A DNA stretch of 64,000 nucleotides from the sequence record ON529855.1; one strand, written 5' to 3'. Below, piece after piece: positions 13,739 through 59,809 of this stretch. A model generated the notes under the pieces. That model worked only from the letters and a program-made list of their open reading frames with translations. It ran no database searches and was not told where the DNA came from. The position numbers and the translations under genes were made by a program. The number at the start of each line of letters is the position of its first letter. Within the stretch, counting starts at the first letter, position 1.

Positions 13739-14218
13739 TCAGGCGGTCGGGGACAGTTCGTCCTCGAAGGCGTGATGCTCGGCGCCGTCGCCGGTGCGGA
13801 CCAGATACATGGGGCCGCTCTCGGCGTCAGCCTCGTCTTCGGTCAGGGCGCGCACGACCTCGGCGGGCGTGTCGGGCGGCGTCGTCGCGTCCGAACAGGT
13901 CGAGGTGAACAGGACGCGGGCGCCCGGCTCGAAGGCATAGACCAAGGGCTCGGCGGCGTCGTCGTCGTTCGACGCCTGGAACTCCGCCGACGACCCGTCG
14001 ATCGAGGTGCCGGGCCAGGACGCGCCGGGATCGGCCAGCATCGTCAGACAGCCGCTGATGTCGGGCTGGGCGCGGGTGCCGATATAATCGCGATAGGCGT
14101 CCGGTTCGCCGACCGGGGTTCCGGGGTTCTCGGCGTGGAAGCGTTGCATGGCCGCGTCGAACAGTTGGCGGGGGTCGGTCACGTCGAGGGTGATGGTGAT
14201 CTGGTAGGCGTCGCGCAT
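13739..14218 (-). CDS. hypothetical protein with C-terminal SH3-like motif (PMYLV---DG----AFEDEL)
   Basis: GGGAGA RBS; CtrA box 14268. Confidence 0.8.
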   Translation of the reverse strand: MRDAYQITITLDVTDPRQLFDAAMQRFHAENPGTPVGEPDAYRDYIGTRAQPDISGCLTMLADPGASWPGTSIDGSSAEFQASNDDDAAEPLVYAFEPGARVLFTSTCSDATTPPDTPAEVVRALTEDEADAESGPMYLVRTGDGAEHHAFEDELSPTA

Positions 14219-54990: not shown

Positions 54991-55017
54991 TGTAAAGGAA
55001 CGGTGTGAGGGATACAA
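54991..55017 (-). promoter_or_regulatory. Class-2 phage promoter (TTGTA variant)
   Basis: TTGTATCCCTCACACCGTTCCTTTACA. Confidence 0.65.
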
Positions 55018-55127
55018 GCAGAACTTCTTGCCGCCTGACAAGATTCGTGTCACTCAGGATGCACCGTCAGGGATGTCCCCTGCCGGCCCAGGCGGCTGCG
55101 GCCGTCGATCGAAAGGACCTCCGCCCC

Positions 55128-56279
55128 ATGAGCGGCACTGACCTGCGCGTCCGCGCGCACATCACCTATTCCGTCACGTCCTATGAGGATACCGGCAAGA
55201 CCGGCACGAGCCGCACCGTGGGCTCGGGTTTCCCCCTGGACTCCGCCAACGAGGTTGCAGCAGCGGTCTTCGCCGCCGCCGACACACCGCGCGAACTGTA
55301 TCAGATCGCCGTGGACGAGAAGGTCCACGACGTCACCCTCCCCGACGACACCCGCCCGGATTGGCTGGCCGACGCCTCGCACTGGTTGGCGCTGCGCCCG
55401 CCGGGCACCTTGGTCACGGTCGAGCGGGTCGGCCCCGATGACCGGATGCATGCGCGCCTGTCGATCTATGAGCCGGTCAAGAGCCGGCCTGGTTTGCGGC
55501 TCGATACCACTGGATTCGAGATCAAGAGCACGCTGAGTTCGGTCGAGAGCGCCATCGGGAGCGTCGCCGATACGGTCAAGGATTCCATCATGCGTGAGAT
55601 CAGCCGCATCAACCTGCCCGAGCGGTGGGATGACCTGTCGAGCGAGACCACCCGGCGTGGGCTGGAAGCCTTCATGGCGGTCCAGACGGTGGGCAAGGAT
55701 GCCTGGCGGGATCATGAGATCGAGGGGATGGTGAATCGCATCGCTCAGCGGACCGGCAAGGCCAAGGTCGACCTGCGGCGCATGTTTGAGAACGCCCAGG
55801 AGCGGGTGATGGAGGCCAAACGCATCCTGGCGGACGCCGTCCCGACCAAGGCGCCCCTGACCGCGCGTGAAGAGCACTACTGCAAGAACCGCGCGAAGGG
55901 TTGCACGCCCCACGACGCGGCGCGCTATGCGGGGTTCCTCAACGATCCGACGTCGCCGTTCAATACCGCCCTGCTGGAAAACTCACCCCCGATCCAGGTG
56001 CGGATCGCGGAACTGGTGGAGAAGGTCGAGTTCCAGGTCGGCGCCGCCGTCTGGGAAGTTCCGGCGGACAAGGCGCCGAAGAACGGCTCCTACCGCCTGG
56101 ACAACGCCACGCAGGAGTTCTTCGCCATGAACATCGGCTTCTACGGCATGACGGTCGAAGCGGCCGCCAAGCAGATGAGCCTGCCGCTGGAAACAGCGGA
56201 CGGTCTGATGCAGATGCCGTCGGTGGAGGCGCGGATCAAGTTCTTCCAGCGCTGCGCCGCCTGGGGCGAACGCGGATGA
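55128..56279 (+). CDS. probable DNA-binding protein with two C-terminal TerS-like HTH repeats (383 aa)
   Basis: AAAGGA RBS; LTAREEHYCKNRAKG-TPHDAARYAGF and LDNATQEFFAMNIGFYG-TVEAAAK. Confidence 0.7.
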   Translation: MSGTDLRVRAHITYSVTSYEDTGKTGTSRTVGSGFPLDSANEVAAAVFAAADTPRELYQIAVDEKVHDVTLPDDTRPDWLADASHWLALRPPGTLVTVERVGPDDRMHARLSIYEPVKSRPGLRLDTTGFEIKSTLSSVESAIGSVADTVKDSIMREISRINLPERWDDLSSETTRRGLEAFMAVQTVGKDAWRDHEIEGMVNRIAQRTGKAKVDLRRMFENAQERVMEAKRILADAVPTKAPLTAREEHYCKNRAKGCTPHDAARYAGFLNDPTSPFNTALLENSPPIQVRIAELVEKVEFQVGAAVWEVPADKAPKNGSYRLDNATQEFFAMNIGFYGMTVEAAAKQMSLPLETADGLMQMPSVEARIKFFQRCAAWGERG

Positions 56280-56509
56280 AGCGCCTGTTCGATGACGCCC
56301 AGAACTGGACGCTGGACGGACAGGAGGCCCTGCGGATCGCCGGCACGCATATGCGGGCGGCGGTCGCTGAACTGGTCGCGGCGGGGTTCTCCTGCCGCGA
56401 CGCCGGCCTGGTCCTCCACGAGGAGGTGACGATGTCGGTCGCATTGCACCACATCGCACCTCCGCTTCGGGCGAACGTCGAGGCCTTCCGCGCGGAAGGT
56501 CCGCAATGA
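56276..56509 (+). CDS. hypothetical protein (77 aa), paralog of next gene
   Basis: MKRLFDD--NW...G-S-RDA--VL. Confidence 0.65.
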   Translation: MKRLFDDAQNWTLDGQEALRIAGTHMRAAVAELVAAGFSCRDAGLVLHEEVTMSVALHHIAPPLRANVEAFRAEGPQ

Positions 56510-56853
56510 AGCGCGTCTTCGACGACCACGGCCTCTGGAACCCGGAGGCTCACGCCGCCGGGCTCCGGGCGCTGCCCCTGGTGAAGCAGGCGTTTGAACT
56601 GCTGCTGGGCGAGGGCTACAACCCGCGCGAGGCGCAAGCGCTGCTCAACGCCACGGTGGATGAGGAGACGCTGGACCGCATCCTTGTGGTCAAGGAGCGG
56701 CTTCGACTGAAGCAGGCCGGGCACGCCGAGGCTGAGCGGGTCGGAAACCTGCGCCGGCATCTGCCGTTCCCGCCGGCCGACCACCCCGTCTTCACGCCCG
56801 AGCACAAGCAGAAGGCCTTCGACCTGGTGCGGCCTGAAGGCGAATCGGCATGA
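56506..56853 (+). CDS. hypothetical protein (115 aa), paralog of previous gene
   Basis: MKRVFDD--LW...GYNPREA-ALL. Confidence 0.7.
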   Translation: MKRVFDDHGLWNPEAHAAGLRALPLVKQAFELLLGEGYNPREAQALLNATVDEETLDRILVVKERLRLKQAGHAEAERVGNLRRHLPFPPADHPVFTPEHKQKAFDLVRPEGESA

Positions 56854-57125
56854 GCCCTGGATACAAGGCGGTCGCGGTCCAGGACGGGTTCCTCCGAAAC
56901 CGATACGGTTATGAGCAGCGCGTTGCGCCCGGCTGCTTCACCATTGTGGACGTGCACGACAACCCGATCCGCACCCACGACGGCTTCGCGGTCTTTGCCA
57001 GCCTCAAGGAAGCGGCCTGGTGCGCCGAGTTGATGTGCGGCGCCTATTTCGAGGGCGAGGCCAGCGTCAAGGCGGCGATGCGCAACCTGCTCGACATCCC
57101 GGAACCACCGGACGACGAAGACTGA
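56850..57125 (+). CDS. hypothetical protein (91 aa)
   Basis: ATGA overlap. Confidence 0.65.
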   Translation: MSPGYKAVAVQDGFLRNRYGYEQRVAPGCFTIVDVHDNPIRTHDGFAVFASLKEAAWCAELMCGAYFEGEASVKAAMRNLLDIPEPPDDED

Positions 57126-57132
57126 AGGCAGC

Positions 57133-57160
57133 TTGACGGTATGGAGGCAAGCGTGCTACA
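57133..57160 (+). promoter_or_regulatory. sigma73-type promoter TTGACG-N16-GCTACA for the tRNA unit
   Basis: Matches the Caulobacter TTGACG / GCTANAWC consensus. Confidence 0.75.
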
Positions 57161-57169
57161 AAACGCCCC

Positions 57170-57202
57170 ATGCTGATCGCCCTGAGAATCAGGACTGCCT
57201 AA
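57170..57202 (+). CDS. putative leaderless leader peptide MLIALRIRTA with AGA and AGG codons
   Basis: ATG CTG ATC GCC CTG AGA ATC AGG ACT GCC TAA near the predicted start site. Confidence 0.4.
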   Translation: MLIALRIRTA

Positions 57203-57228
57203 GCGCCCCAGACCACCGGGGCGCTTTT
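57201..57228 (+). terminator. Terminator-like hairpin between promoter and tRNA
   Basis: AAGCGCCCC...GGGGCGCTT-TT ending 1 nt before the tRNA. Confidence 0.6.
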
Positions 57229-57229
57229 G

Positions 57230-57304
57230 GCGTCTATGGTGTAGCGGACAGCACATCGATCTTCTAAATCGAGAGCCCTGGTTCGAATCCAGGTAGACGC
57301 GCCA
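57230..57304 (+). tRNA. tRNA-Arg(TCT)
   Basis: Acceptor GCGTCTA/TAGACGC, D stem GTGT/GCAC, anticodon stem TCGAT/ATCGA with loop CT-TCT-AA, T arm CCTGG-TTCGAAT-CCAGG, encoded CCA. Confidence 0.97.
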
Positions 57305-57359
57305 TCACTCCTGCGCTGCGCGCCGTCGTGACCGGCTCCGCCGGCCGCACCTCCGGTCG
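57305..57359. repeat. Dispersed GNA-mini-hairpin repeat, copy 5, abutting the tRNA CCA
   Basis: GCGC-TGC-GCGC and CCGGC-TCC-GCCGG, ACCTCCGGTCG. Confidence 0.8.
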
Positions 57360-57483
57360 ATAACGCTCAAAATGACCACGCCCGGCACAGCCCAGCAGCC
57401 GAACCGGCTGTTCCCGTTCGGGATCATTTCGACCAGGACCGGCACGCCCGACACGATTTGTTCCCGTTCGGGATCAAGGCTCG

Positions 57484-57759
57484 TTAACGTCGAGCGACAC
57501 CCCGCCCCACCAGGACTTCTCGCAAGGTCTGGATCGTTTTGGCTCCCCACTCCAAATCCGTAATGCTGTTGGCGCCTCGAAACATGGCGCGGTCAAGCGC
57601 GATCTGGAGTTCACCGTCAGGCAGGTGCTGGAGTTCGCGCAGGGCGTTCACGGCCAGGGTTGAAGCCTTGTCGGCTTCCCGCAGACCTTCAGCAACAAAG
57701 CCGAACATCACGGCGTTGATCAGACGTATGGCGGCAGGGTGGATGGTTTCATCGGTCAT
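57484..57759 (-). CDS. hypothetical protein (91 aa)
   Basis: Coding-like; GGAGA upstream. Confidence 0.6.
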   Translation of the reverse strand: MTDETIHPAAIRLINAVMFGFVAEGLREADKASTLAVNALRELQHLPDGELQIALDRAMFRGANSITDLEWGAKTIQTLREVLVGRGVARR

Positions 57760-57827
57760 GAACTTAGTGTCTCCAAAGCGAACCGTGCCGTCAACGTGAC
57801 GCTATCCGGCAAACTGTGCCACTCGGA

Positions 57828-58217
57828 TCAGGCGCGGCGCACCAACGGCGTGTCGACGAAACGCTCGTCGGCGAACATCACCCCGACCAGCGCATAGAGG
57901 TCGGGATCAGCGGCGAATTCTTCCACCACGTCCATGACGAACATCTCGGCCGTCCAGCCCCAGCCGTTCGCCTGAACGATGGCCTGGTTCAGATCGAGCA
58001 GGCGCTGCACGGCTCGTTCGTCCCACACATAGAGGGCGCCGCCGAAGACGTTGCTTTCGGCTTCCGTGAAGACACGGTGCTTGAGATCGGTGGTCTGGAG
58101 CCAGGCCAGAGCCCGCTCCAGGGTCCACCCCGCCATAACGATGGTGCCCAGCGGCAGATACCCCATGGGCTTGTCGCGGCCGACCCGCAGGAGATCGTTC
58201 ATATAGGCTTCGGACAT
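57828..58217 (-). CDS. conserved phage hypothetical protein (KP-GYLP...GALY--D motif)
   Basis: AGGAGG RBS before ATG 58217. Confidence 0.75.
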   Translation of the reverse strand: MSEAYMNDLLRVGRDKPMGYLPLGTIVMAGWTLERALAWLQTTDLKHRVFTEAESNVFGGALYVWDERAVQRLLDLNQAIVQANGWGWTAEMFVMDVVEEFAADPDLYALVGVMFADERFVDTPLVRRA

Positions 58218-58282
58218 GGGTCCTCCTGGTTCAGATATGACGCGTTCGGCCACGCAAGGCGTCAGATATGACGCAGGCGGGA

Positions 58283-58891
58283 TCAGTCGTTGCCGTAGGG
58301 GTGGATGGTCCGCTCCGCGTACAGGTAGGCGTTGTCCTCGGACAACACGCCCTGGCGCTGGCCGTCGCTGTCGTAGCCGATGCGCTCCTTGAGCCGTTCG
58401 GTATAGTGCTTGAGCCAGACGGCGGCCGCGACCTCGGACTTGAACGAGCGTTCCGTCAGGCGGCTGTAGTGGCACAGCCAGCGCGCGCGGTGGTTGGGCG
58501 GCGCGGCGGCGATGTAGGTCTCGCGCACCCCCGTGTCTGAATAGTCCGCCATGACGTACCGGCGCACCGTATCTTCGGCTTCCGTGTAGATATGGCGCTC
58601 GGTGATGACGAAGTTCGGGTATTCCTTCCCCACGGCGCGCGAGATCACATACTCGGGAAACTGCGCCGTGAAGGCGGCCTTGCGCTCGGCCTCTACGGCG
58701 TCGTAGGCGTCCCAGAGCGGACGCCACAGAAGGTCGTTCTCGGCCATCTGGGCGCGCTCGCGCCCGTTCGCTCGGCGGTTGAACTCTTCCCAGGACACTG
58801 GGTTACGCCCCGGCCAGATGAACCACATCAGGAAGACGCACAGGGCGAGCACCACCAGGGCGCCGATGATGTAGCAGGTGTAGTCGGGCAT
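58283..58891 (-). CDS. membrane-anchored hypothetical protein (202 aa)
   Basis: AGGAGG RBS; N-terminal TM; promoter at 58922. Confidence 0.75.
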   Translation of the reverse strand: MPDYTCYIIGALVVLALCVFLMWFIWPGRNPVSWEEFNRRANGRERAQMAENDLLWRPLWDAYDAVEAERKAAFTAQFPEYVISRAVGKEYPNFVITERHIYTEAEDTVRRYVMADYSDTGVRETYIAAAPPNHRARWLCHYSRLTERSFKSEVAAAVWLKHYTERLKERIGYDSDGQRQGVLSEDNAYLYAERTIHPYGND

Positions 58892-58921
58892 GAGGTCCTC
58901 CTGGGTTGTCGTCGAGGATGG

Positions 58922-58948
58922 TGTAAAGGAATGATCTGCGCCAGTCAA
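58922..58948 (-). promoter_or_regulatory. Class-2 phage promoter
   Basis: TTGACTGGCGCAGATCATTCCTTTACA. Confidence 0.75.
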
Positions 58949-59286
58949 GCCGCGAGCGCGGCGATGGTCAAGGCGACCGCCGCCAGCGTGATCATCTTGC
59001 CCGATCCCCTGATCAGGCTGTCACCATAGGAGAGCGAGGCCGGGTCGCCCCAACTCCGGCGCTCCCGCCCCGCGAGCGTCATCATGCCGGCGAACAGGAC
59101 GAGGAATCCGGCGGTCGCCAGGAAGGTCAGCACGGCCCACCCCACCGACAGGGGGAAGAAGGCGAACATGCCCCAGACCAGAAACAGCCCCAGGCTGAAC
59201 CCGCCTTCAATGTCACGGTGCAGCGGCTCGTAGTCGGCGGCCGCCATGCGGGCCGAGACGAGGCGCAGGTGAGTTTCACGATCCAT
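58945..59286 (-). CDS. three-TM membrane protein (113 aa)
   Basis: Hydrophobic segments. Confidence 0.65.
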   Translation of the reverse strand: MDRETHLRLVSARMAAADYEPLHRDIEGGFSLGLFLVWGMFAFFPLSVGWAVLTFLATAGFLVLFAGMMTLAGRERRSWGDPASLSYGDSLIRGSGKMITLAAVALTIAALAA

Positions 59287-59809
59287 GCAGGGGTCCTTTC
59301 AAGGCGTCGAGCACCGCCGCGACCGCGACGGGGTTCATGGTGAGCGGCTCGCCCTCGCCGCGCAGGCGGGCGGTCCAGTAGGCGTCCTGCTTCCGAACAT
59401 AGGCGCCCCAGTCCCGGACATGCTGGTCGGGTTGAGCCGGCAGGTCAGCGGTTCCGGCGCGGATGTCGCAGATCACGCCGAACTGCTTCAGGCAGAAGGT
59501 CTCGGCCATCTGGATGGCTTGATCCGTCGCGGGGCCTGGGGCGGCCTCGTAGAGGATCATGGCGTGCCACAGGGTCTCCTGCCCGACGGCGAAGGTCTGG
59601 CGGACATCTTCGCTGATCTCGGCCCCGACGATCTGCAACACTCCCGCGTGGAACCCTTGCAGGAAGTCGAAGGCGGTCCGACGCCCGTCATCATCGGCCG
59701 CGTCCGCCACCGCGTAGATGCGCTCCAGCGCGTCCAGCACCAGGACGTCTTCAGTCCCGCGCTGACAGGCGTAGGCGAACGTGGCGAGGTCGTCGGCGCG
59801 CTGGGTCAC
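59276..59809 (-). CDS. hypothetical protein (177 aa)
   Basis: Overlapping operon. Confidence 0.7.
   Translation of the reverse strand: MTQRADDLATFAYACQRGTEDVLVLDALERIYAVADAADDDGRRTAFDFLQGFHAGVLQIVGAEISEDVRQTFAVGQETLWHAMILYEAAPGPATDQAIQMAETFCLKQFGVICDIRAGTADLPAQPDQHVRDWGAYVRKQDAYWTARLRGEGEPLTMNPVAVAAVLDALKGPLHGS

Follow-up and report, generated by a model that had tools for sequence, protein, structure and literature searches.

The window analysed here comprised bases 1-64000 of the genome of Brevundimonas phage vB_BpoS-Domovoi (ON529855.1; 100% identity, same coordinates), a member of the Dolichocephalovirinae with a genome of 352,705 base pairs (bp) and the host B. pondensis. It contains a gene for tRNA-Arg(TCT) which is preceded by a promoter, by a ten-codon open reading frame (ORF) harbouring the rare codons AGA and AGG, here termed the mini-ORF, and by a terminator-like hairpin to which the stop codon of the mini-ORF is fused. 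All seven phages carrying a related tRNA-Arg(TCT) keep this one architecture. They form the Domovoi clade (Domovoi, Bambus, Papperlapapp, Kabachok and Marchewka) and the Kikimora clade (Kikimora and Gurke). The locus is best explained as a self-contained tRNA-Arg(UCU) transcription unit made up of promoter, mini-ORF, hairpin and tRNA. An earlier reading of the letters alone, the sequence-only reading, had named the promoter, the ATG, the ORF with AGA and AGG, the 9-bp hairpin and the tRNA-Arg(TCT), and each of these was recovered where it had been claimed. The features of the locus, with lengths in nucleotides (nt), are the following.

55128-57125, plus strand: upstream operon, its final stop codon at 57123-57125
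57133-57138, plus strand: -35 element TTGACG, invariant in the five Domovoi-clade phages, the adjacent downstream spacer varying
57154-57162, plus strand: extended -10 element TGc TACAAA, TGCTA fixed in 7/7 phages
57163-57169, plus strand: G+C-rich discriminator ACGCCCC, constant in length per clade (Domovoi 7 nt, Kikimora 6 nt), variable in sequence
57170, plus strand: predicted transcription start at the A of ATG (leaderless mRNA), from promoter spacing
57170-57202, plus strand: mini-ORF MLIALRIRTA and TAA, ten codons, intact in 7/7 phages
57185-57193, plus strand: putative sensor motif AGA-NNC-AGG (AGA 57185-57187, AGG 57191-57193), fixed in 7/7 phages
57181-57193, plus strand: small hairpin CCTGA-GAA-TCAGG, stable in the Domovoi clade only
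57201-57226, plus strand: terminator-like hairpin of 9 bp with an 8-nt loop, left arm 57201-57209 and right arm 57218-57226
57225-57228, plus strand: short U run, TTTT followed by G, read off the sequence
57230-57304, plus strand: tRNA-Arg, anticodon TCT, CCA encoded (ARAGORN; Rfam tRNA model)
57305-57360, plus strand: structured 3′ trailer, 70-81% identical in Bambus, Kikimora and Gurke, unrelated in Papperlapapp, Kabachok and Marchewka
57759 to 57484, minus strand: convergent operon downstream of tRNA-Arg(TCT)

Promoter, mini-ORF and hairpin upstream of tRNA-Arg(TCT)

ARAGORN called the tRNA with the anticodon tct, and the gene scored 65 bits with the Rfam model RF00005, for which the gathering score is 29. 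The Domovoi promoter in front of it consists of TTGACG, a spacer of 17-18 nt and (TGc)TACAAA, a -10 element without the final T. The pattern TTGACGG-N13-17-CTANA was matched once in the window against 0.04 matches expected, and a generic consensus scan of the window called neither the tRNA-Arg promoter nor the leader terminator. Within the Domovoi clade the -35 element and TGCTA are constant and the spacer is variable, a conservation footprint compatible with a sigma-70-type promoter. The Kikimora clade has a weak -35 element (TTGCTT), and the extended -10 element of Kikimora and Gurke reads TGc TATGCT. The Caulobacter-type promoter motif is GCTANAWC, which the Domovoi -10 element presumably matches as well.

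The A at 57170 is the sole purine 7-9 nt 3′ of the -10 element, at equal spacing in both clades. From this spacing we infer that transcription starts at A57170, which would give a leaderless mini-mRNA. The first ~10 nt were unpaired in the predicted folds of the Domovoi-clade leaders, which meets the need of leaderless initiation. That leaderless mRNAs are common in Caulobacter, as the sequence-only reading had stated, agrees with the report of 375 such mRNAs, the translation of which equals that of leadered ones (PMC4117421).

The mini-ORFs of Domovoi and of the two more distant phages read as follows.

Domovoi: ATG CTG ATC GCC CTG AGA ATC AGG ACT GCC TAA
Kikimora: ATG CTG ACG ATC AGA CAC AGG ATG ACC GCT TAG
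Gurke: ATG CTG AAA ATC AGA CGC AGG ATG ATC GCT TAG

In 153 probable phage genes, AGA occurs 1.05 times, AGG 2.6 times and CGC 44.8 times per 1000 codons, corresponding to 1.4%, 3.4% and 58% of the arginine codons. AGA and AGG are thereby the rarest synonyms. The sequence-only reading had assigned this rarity to G+C-rich Caulobacter-type genomes, and for the phage itself the assignment held. Both codons are constant in all seven phages without drift to a commoner synonym such as CGC, and the codon between them takes five forms (ATC, ACC, CTC, CAC and, in Gurke, CGC).

The terminator-like hairpin has a 9-bp stem with 7 G-C pairs (-17.6 kcal/mol), and in 7/7 phages the stop codon (TAA or TAG) contributes its final two bases to the stem as the first two that pair. 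Pairing is kept in all 63 alignment cells (9 pairs in seven phages), with one compensatory change from G-C to A-U in Gurke and two one-sided changes that preserve the pair. The U run is TTCTT, TTTTC or TTTTT in other relatives and TTTAC in Kikimora and Gurke. Under relaxed criteria the hairpin falls in the class of the ~25 clear Domovoi terminators, but is shorter and weaker and has a larger loop; the clear terminators combine an A-rich 5′ flank, a G+C stem, TTTT(T) and a tetraloop, and the leader hairpin has a loop of 8 nt.

Folding of the leader was stronger than that of shuffled versions (z about -3). The folds of six leaders contained the terminator hairpin and, in one clade, the small upstream hairpin: CCTGA/TCAGG was predicted in every Domovoi-clade leader folded, and Kikimora and Gurke have a CTGA-NNN-TCAG element three codons earlier which is unstable. 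The sequence-only reading had allowed that this small hairpin might make the presence of AGA and AGG a coincidence. That explanation is disfavoured, as AGA-NNC-AGG persists in Kikimora and Gurke, where the small hairpin is shifted or unstable. No Rfam family matched the leader, its motif was not repeated above chance expectation elsewhere in the window, and the T-box model gave zero matches at E<=10 in 57050-57500. Direct tRNA binding of the T-box kind was rejected on the lack of a model match and the shortness of the leader. A long pairing between the -35 and ATG regions in read-through transcripts (z = -4.4) was rejected too, since Kikimora and Gurke do not conserve it and their upstream terminator would block the read-through transcripts needed for it.

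Conservation of the mini-ORF in two phage clades

Conservation of the mini-ORF in relatives was the test which the sequence-only reading had set for itself; it was carried out, and the mini-ORF was intact in 7/7 phages from two clades. The shared set consists of an ATG 7-8 nt after the extended -10 element, a length of ten codons, in-frame AGA-NNC-AGG, fusion of stop codon and hairpin, and a tRNA starting 4-5 nt 3′ of the hairpin and 59-61 nt from the ATG (59 nt in Kikimora and Gurke). The sequence CATGCTGA at the leader start is constant across the seven phages. Bambus, Papperlapapp, Kabachok and Marchewka have leaders 92-100% identical to that of Domovoi with the ORF intact, and within this clade the ORF differs only at codon 3 (ATC/ACC) and codon 7 (ATC/ACC/CTC). 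The Domovoi clade alone is too shallow to decide on the conservation of the mini-ORF. A wastewater read covering window positions 57137-57228 added a new leader variant in which codons 3 and 7 are both ACC, the loop is 2 nt shorter, and ORF and stem are intact.

Kikimora and Gurke, with genomes of 312 and 321 kb, were reached by a search with the Kabachok tRNA. Between the clades the leaders are 59-69% and the promoters 47-60% identical, the Kikimora-clade BLAST alignment begins only at the right arm of the hairpin, and the interior of the Kikimora and Gurke ORFs is about half different from the Domovoi type. The ATG is in the Kikimora clade located seven nt after the -10 element, and the hairpin begins with the AG of the stop codon. 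The 7-8 ORF substitutions are all non-synonymous and leave ATG, AGA, AGG and stop untouched, which argues for selection on codons, frame and length and not on the peptide. Comparison of the sequences thus indicates that selection acts on the mini-ORF at the codon level. In every case the middle codon ends in C and AGG is followed directly by an A, so that conservation reaches beyond AGA and AGG. A trans-acting peptide was rejected on the same non-synonymous substitutions and because the clades share 5/10 residues only, and a +1 frameshift at AGG bypassing the stop codon was rejected because the +1 frame of Kikimora meets TGA immediately.

An open interior of nine codons with in-frame AGA and AGG arose in 0.7-2% of composition-matched shuffles, and the AGA-N-AGG arrangement in 0.08-0.25%. 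Drift was simulated by introducing 10-16 random substitutions into the Domovoi ORF, 16/33 positions being different in the ungapped Kikimora alignment. The ATG, the open frame, the stop at codon 11, AGA and AGG were jointly kept in 0.04-0.8% of the trials, figures which assume a neutral interior, treat the two clades as one comparison and are indicative only.

Three tRNA bodies, 71-81% mutually identical and with compensatory stem changes, are found among the seven phages. Papperlapapp and Kabachok have the same leader and tRNA bodies only 75% identical. The presence of one leader before divergent tRNA bodies suggests an association with the anticodon identity and not with the tRNA sequence. 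Pairing between leader and tRNA body was rejected on the same observation; a 5-bp match of UGCUG in the leader with CAGCA in the tRNA consists of bases invariant on both sides.

Both Kikimora and Gurke carry an unannotated small gene and a strong 11-bp tetraloop terminator directly 5′ of the tRNA-Arg promoter. The small gene in Kikimora is a 27-codon ORF (L138 2271-2354) with the Shine-Dalgarno-like GGAGAG, and the terminator that follows it (L138 2380-2405) has a U run overlapping the tRNA-Arg -35 element. With a separate terminator upstream, the leader hairpin belongs to the tRNA unit. That the hairpin ends the upstream operon (55128-57125), with the tRNA promoter in front of it by accident, is therefore very improbable: the Domovoi clade has no other terminator between the upstream stop codon (57125) and the tRNA, as this explanation would have it, but Kikimora and Gurke contradict it by keeping the leader hairpin, with a compensatory change, next to a terminator of their own.

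Searches for further relatives covered several collections. IMG/VR, searched with hairpin, tRNA and architecture patterns, gave one match, which was A+T-rich, lacked a tRNA and was due to chance. In metagenome contigs a 20-mer had zero matches and a 16-mer more than 120, all of them seed-only; the nine matches of a 17-mer in genome contigs were all by chance, and tblastn with the upstream gene recovered the five close phages and nothing else.

Possible ribosome occlusion of the hairpin and rival explanations

The start codon at the predicted 5′ end, the fixed frame and length, the two rare codons and the stop codon on the hairpin are together what would be expected of a translated sensor ORF, and an element working as RNA only has no obvious need for this set of features. 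That the mini-ORF is translated and acts in cis on the transcription or maturation of the tRNA has, in our estimate, a little less than an even chance. The mechanism which we tentatively favour, while holding it somewhat likelier to be wrong than right, is an occlusion attenuator resembling those of pyrBI and pyrE. The host-type promoter would start the RNA at or within one base of the AUG, giving a leaderless mini-mRNA of ten codons with AGA and AGG, both read by the downstream tRNA, and ending in a stop codon that forms part of the base of a weak intrinsic terminator, 4-5 nt 5′ of the tRNA. A ribosome at the stop codon would occupy the left arm of the hairpin, termination would fail and the polymerase would enter the tRNA. 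With a ribosome held at AGA or AGG, or with none, the hairpin would be free and the RNA would end after about 59 nt. The output of tRNA would then rise with the capacity to decode AGA and AGG, as in an autocatalytic or translation-gated switch, and would cease once tRNA-Arg is uncharged or cleaved, or in the absence of translation.

The geometry behind this proposal is given below, the A of ATG being counted as +1.

AGA: +16 in the Domovoi clade, +13 in the Kikimora clade
AGG: +22 in the Domovoi clade, +19 in the Kikimora clade
Stop codon: +31 in both clades
Hairpin left arm: +32 to +40 in both clades

About 10 nt 3′ of the A site are shielded by a ribosome, and the last 2-3 stem pairs must close for termination; in E. 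coli, the efficiency of a terminator fell from about 90% to <10% once a stop codon had been relocated to 5 bp upstream of it (PMC4824070). Computed from these values, the footprint of a ribosome at the stop codon takes in the entire left arm, and that of one waiting at AGA takes in none of its bases in either clade. The sequence-only reading had expected a stall at AGA to leave the hairpin free, in which it was right, and a stall at AGG to cover the arm, which fits less well, as such a ribosome would reach only the three basal pairs in the Domovoi clade and no pair at all in Kikimora and Gurke. The constant distance to the hairpin belongs to the stop codon and not to AGG. As only a ribosome at the stop codon would cover the whole arm and no antiterminator was found, slow decoding is predicted to give less tRNA and not more, and the sign of control that we infer is positive feedback. 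This runs opposite to a homeostatic form of the proposal of the sequence-only reading that the tRNA would adjust its own synthesis to the host supply, for instance after attack by an anticodon nuclease; that reading had itself called the direction unclear.

Several observations weigh against ribosome occlusion. The U run is short (4 U; UUUAC in Kikimora), so termination may be inefficient or fail altogether, and the hairpin falls below the threshold of a standard terminator scan. In the six leaders folded no antiterminator was found and no upstream segment complementary to either terminator arm, and reading the leader by eye revealed no elemental-pause consensus and no conserved pause hairpin. 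In E. coli, translation lowered the activity of a terminator 30 bp after the start codon by only about 10%, as the leading ribosome is at that point still behind the polymerase, and short leaders need a pause site (PMC4824070). A leader of 60 nt would by this comparison pose a kinetic problem for occlusion. A supply gene would, moreover, not usually be expected to run on positive feedback. The layout was present in 0/37 solitary or first-in-group phage tRNA-Arg(TCT) genes among 116 IMG/VR loci sampled. The seven phages come from one study, with one host strain named in 6/7 records (PMC10070969), and two clades from a single study offer few independent evolutionary trials. Four public wastewater runs gave only sparse DNA-like contigs over 55000-59500, in which no ends of transcripts were seen.

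Attenuation mediated by ribosomes has precedents among amino-acid, pyrimidine and resistance genes. The defining feature of an occlusion attenuator, an ORF ending at or in the terminator hairpin, was found in 7/7 phages. The pyrBI and pyrE leaders of E. coli likewise have a short ORF reaching up to or into an intrinsic terminator, do without an antiterminator, and have read-through set by how closely the ribosome trails the polymerase. They differ in that their variable is polymerase speed, via pausing sensitive to uridine triphosphate (UTP), where the present locus would depend on how fast the ribosome passes two rare codons; they regulate an enzyme, whereas here the product is a tRNA, the mRNA is leaderless, the leader has 60 nt and a pause site was not found. 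The trp, his, leu, thr and pheA attenuators share with the locus a mini-ORF with regulatory codons linked to the product and an intrinsic terminator before the gene. The trp/his type has an alternative 2:3 antiterminator and 1:2 pause hairpins, neither of which was found here, its logic is opposite, a stall here giving termination from a leaderless mRNA, and it senses an amino acid pool where the locus would sense a specific isoacceptor. With the antiterminator lacking, the locus should not be classed as a trp/his-type attenuator. In mycobacteria, leaderless short ORFs rich in one codon act as cis regulators, and as here their codon content matches the pathway downstream; they control protein genes upon an amino acid signal, without a tRNA gene and without a stop codon fused to a terminator. 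T-boxes likewise consist of a leader before a terminator with a codon matching one tRNA, but they bind the tRNA directly, through leaders that contain Stem I and the T-box antiterminator and measure at least about 200 nt, as compared with 60 nt here, and control synthetase and amino-acid genes in Firmicutes. Expression of lambda int, with AGA/AGG near its start, and of AGA minigenes depends on the rare tRNA-Arg(UCU) (PMC2490762). The phage setting and the start-proximal AGA/AGG are common to these and to the mini-ORF; their codons tune protein yield or sequester tRNA, with no terminator and no link to the transcription of a tRNA gene.

The leader might instead be an untranslated structured RNA or small RNA of ~59 nt with a leaky terminator, the tRNA being made by read-through and the reading frame being incidental, and the conserved CATGCTGA and AGANNCAGGA might act as start-site context, seed or protein site. 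We consider either form unlikely, though deserving of serious attention. The better folding relative to shuffled leaders, the constant C and A outside the two rare codons, and the recurrence of a pre-tRNA hairpin in the main cluster, 9 nt upstream of tRNA-Pro, would all suit such an RNA, which leaves unexplained, in both clades, the placement of the ATG, the open frame, the length of ten codons and the fusion of stop and hairpin, a combination kept in <1% of cases under drift. The small hairpin that could account for AGA and AGG is shifted or absent in Kikimora and Gurke, and neither an Rfam family nor an above-chance repetition of the motif elsewhere in the window speaks for the untranslated RNA. 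A translated mini-ORF could also act post-transcriptionally, which we judge to have a distinctly small probability. In one version the hairpin, which reaches position -4 of the tRNA, is opened by the terminating ribosome, which frees the 5′ leader for RNase P; in another, the leader is a minigene mRNA, released and stable by virtue of its hairpin cap, that ties up or tests tRNA-Arg in trans. Neither requires coupling of ribosome and polymerase, so the kinetic objection is avoided. There are just 3-5 unpaired nt between the hairpin and the RNase P cleavage site, and the RNase P version depends on the premise that the RNase P protein requires an unpaired 5′ leader. As regards minigenes, the ORF has ten codons and the phage has a pth gene, for peptidyl-tRNA hydrolase, and a transfer-messenger RNA (tmRNA). 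Start-proximal AGA/AGG behave like minigenes in trapping tRNA-Arg as peptidyl-tRNA (PMC2490762), but here AGA and AGG are non-adjacent and located at codons 5-8, positions at which that effect was weaker (PMC2490762), and sequestering a tRNA supplied by the same unit has no obvious benefit.

The homeostatic version, in which scarcity of AGG/AGA decoders leaves a stalled ribosome over the base of the hairpin and yields more tRNA-Arg(UCU), appears improbable to us. Negative feedback is biologically sensible, and the phage carries RNA ligase 2, an enzyme that may repair tRNA. The 7-9 nt from AGG to the hairpin in the Domovoi clade are also fewer than the 10-15 free nt for full folding (PMC4824070). 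The distance from the first base of AGG to the hairpin is, on the other side, variable (10 nt in Domovoi, 13 nt in Kikimora and Gurke), and AGA, the codon read best by tRNA-Arg(UCU), lies 16-19 nt from the hairpin, where a stall would favour termination; the two codons would thus oppose each other under homeostatic control.

Should the mini-ORF be translated and gate the transcription or maturation of the tRNA, a tRNA gene would for the first time be known to be under leader-peptide control, of which no report was found in the literature searched, a search that was not exhaustive. The phage would link its supply of tRNA-Arg(UCU) to the decoding of AGA/AGG in the infected cell, and phage tRNA genes could be regulated cargo, beyond passive patches for codon usage. 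It would also offer a clue to the retention of a solitary tRNA for a hardly used codon (about 1 per 1000) by giant phages whose hosts are G+C-rich, and the leader would be a minimal 60-nt sensor without antiterminator, usable as a codon-specific reporter or switch. The phage-host pair is culturable, and point mutations suffice to probe the model.

Flanks of the tRNA and other tRNA-related features

In Kabachok (L004 3132-3206) and Marchewka (L005 3130-3204) the tRNA body is 75% and the leader 93% identical to that of Domovoi, and the 3′ flanks are unrelated to the Domovoi flank. A divergent body and an unrelated flank behind a like leader suggest that tRNA body and 3′ flank were exchanged together, with the junction at the 5′ end of the tRNA. 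In Papperlapapp only, a 966-nt gene annotated as 'RNA polymerase' is inserted 54 nt 3′ of the tRNA (116135-117100; L003 3259-4224), and Marchewka has a different ORF of 246 nt at the same place. By its sequence the 3′ side of tRNA-Arg(TCT) appears to be an insertion hot spot. Two exact copies of TGTTCCCGTTCGGGATCA (57409-57426 and 57459-57476, 50 nt apart) occupy the convergent gap 3′ of the Domovoi tRNA, each with the palindrome TCCCG-NN-CGGGA. Both are present in Bambus with the spacing unchanged and with differences in the central two bases only, and the pair looks like operator sites or small hairpins.

According to the describing paper, Domovoi has 25 tRNAs and no detectable tmRNA (PMC10070969). 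The remaining 24 tRNAs comprise two for Met and one for Cys near 223-224 kb, with 21 further genes clustered at 294.7-304 kb; none is for Arg. Only tRNA-Arg(TCT) among the 11 first-in-group Domovoi tRNAs has the mini-ORF, a comparable one being found before 0/10 of the others. The hairpin before tRNA-Pro(CGG) is a strong terminator hairpin ending 9 nt upstream of the gene (minus strand, ON529855.1 about 301.7-302.0 kb; L008 13718-13750), preceded by a TTGACA-17-TAGAGA promoter and an unannotated G+C3-rich ORF of ~43 codons (L008 about 13823-13954). This second case of a hairpin before a tRNA in Domovoi has an upstream ORF without enrichment of the cognate codon.

A permuted two-piece tmRNA gene was detected between tRNA-Cys and tRNA-Met on the minus strand (ON529855.1 about 224036-224291; L142 36036-36291), with 60.2 bits for Rfam RF04321 against a gathering score of 47 and a TTGACA-17-TATACA promoter upstream. 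The phage also encodes a peptidyl-tRNA hydrolase (L006 37956-38381), RNA ligase 2 (L142 29734-30972), a GatB-like amidotransferase fragment (L142 10042-10518) and a peptide deformylase (L008 8395-8937), a large complement of genes serving translation and the upkeep of tRNA. Peptidyl-tRNA hydrolase, RNA ligase 2 and tmRNA together suggest that the phage invests in the upkeep of tRNAs and ribosomes. Finally, stretches resembling a T-arm and acceptor end (GGTTCGAATCC...CCACCA and similar) lie just 5′ of tRNA-Ser(GGA), tRNA-Leu(CAG) and the second tRNA-Met (L008 upstream of 12150 and 13165; L142 35274-35504, minus strand), and judged by their letters they may be unannotated or decayed tRNA genes.

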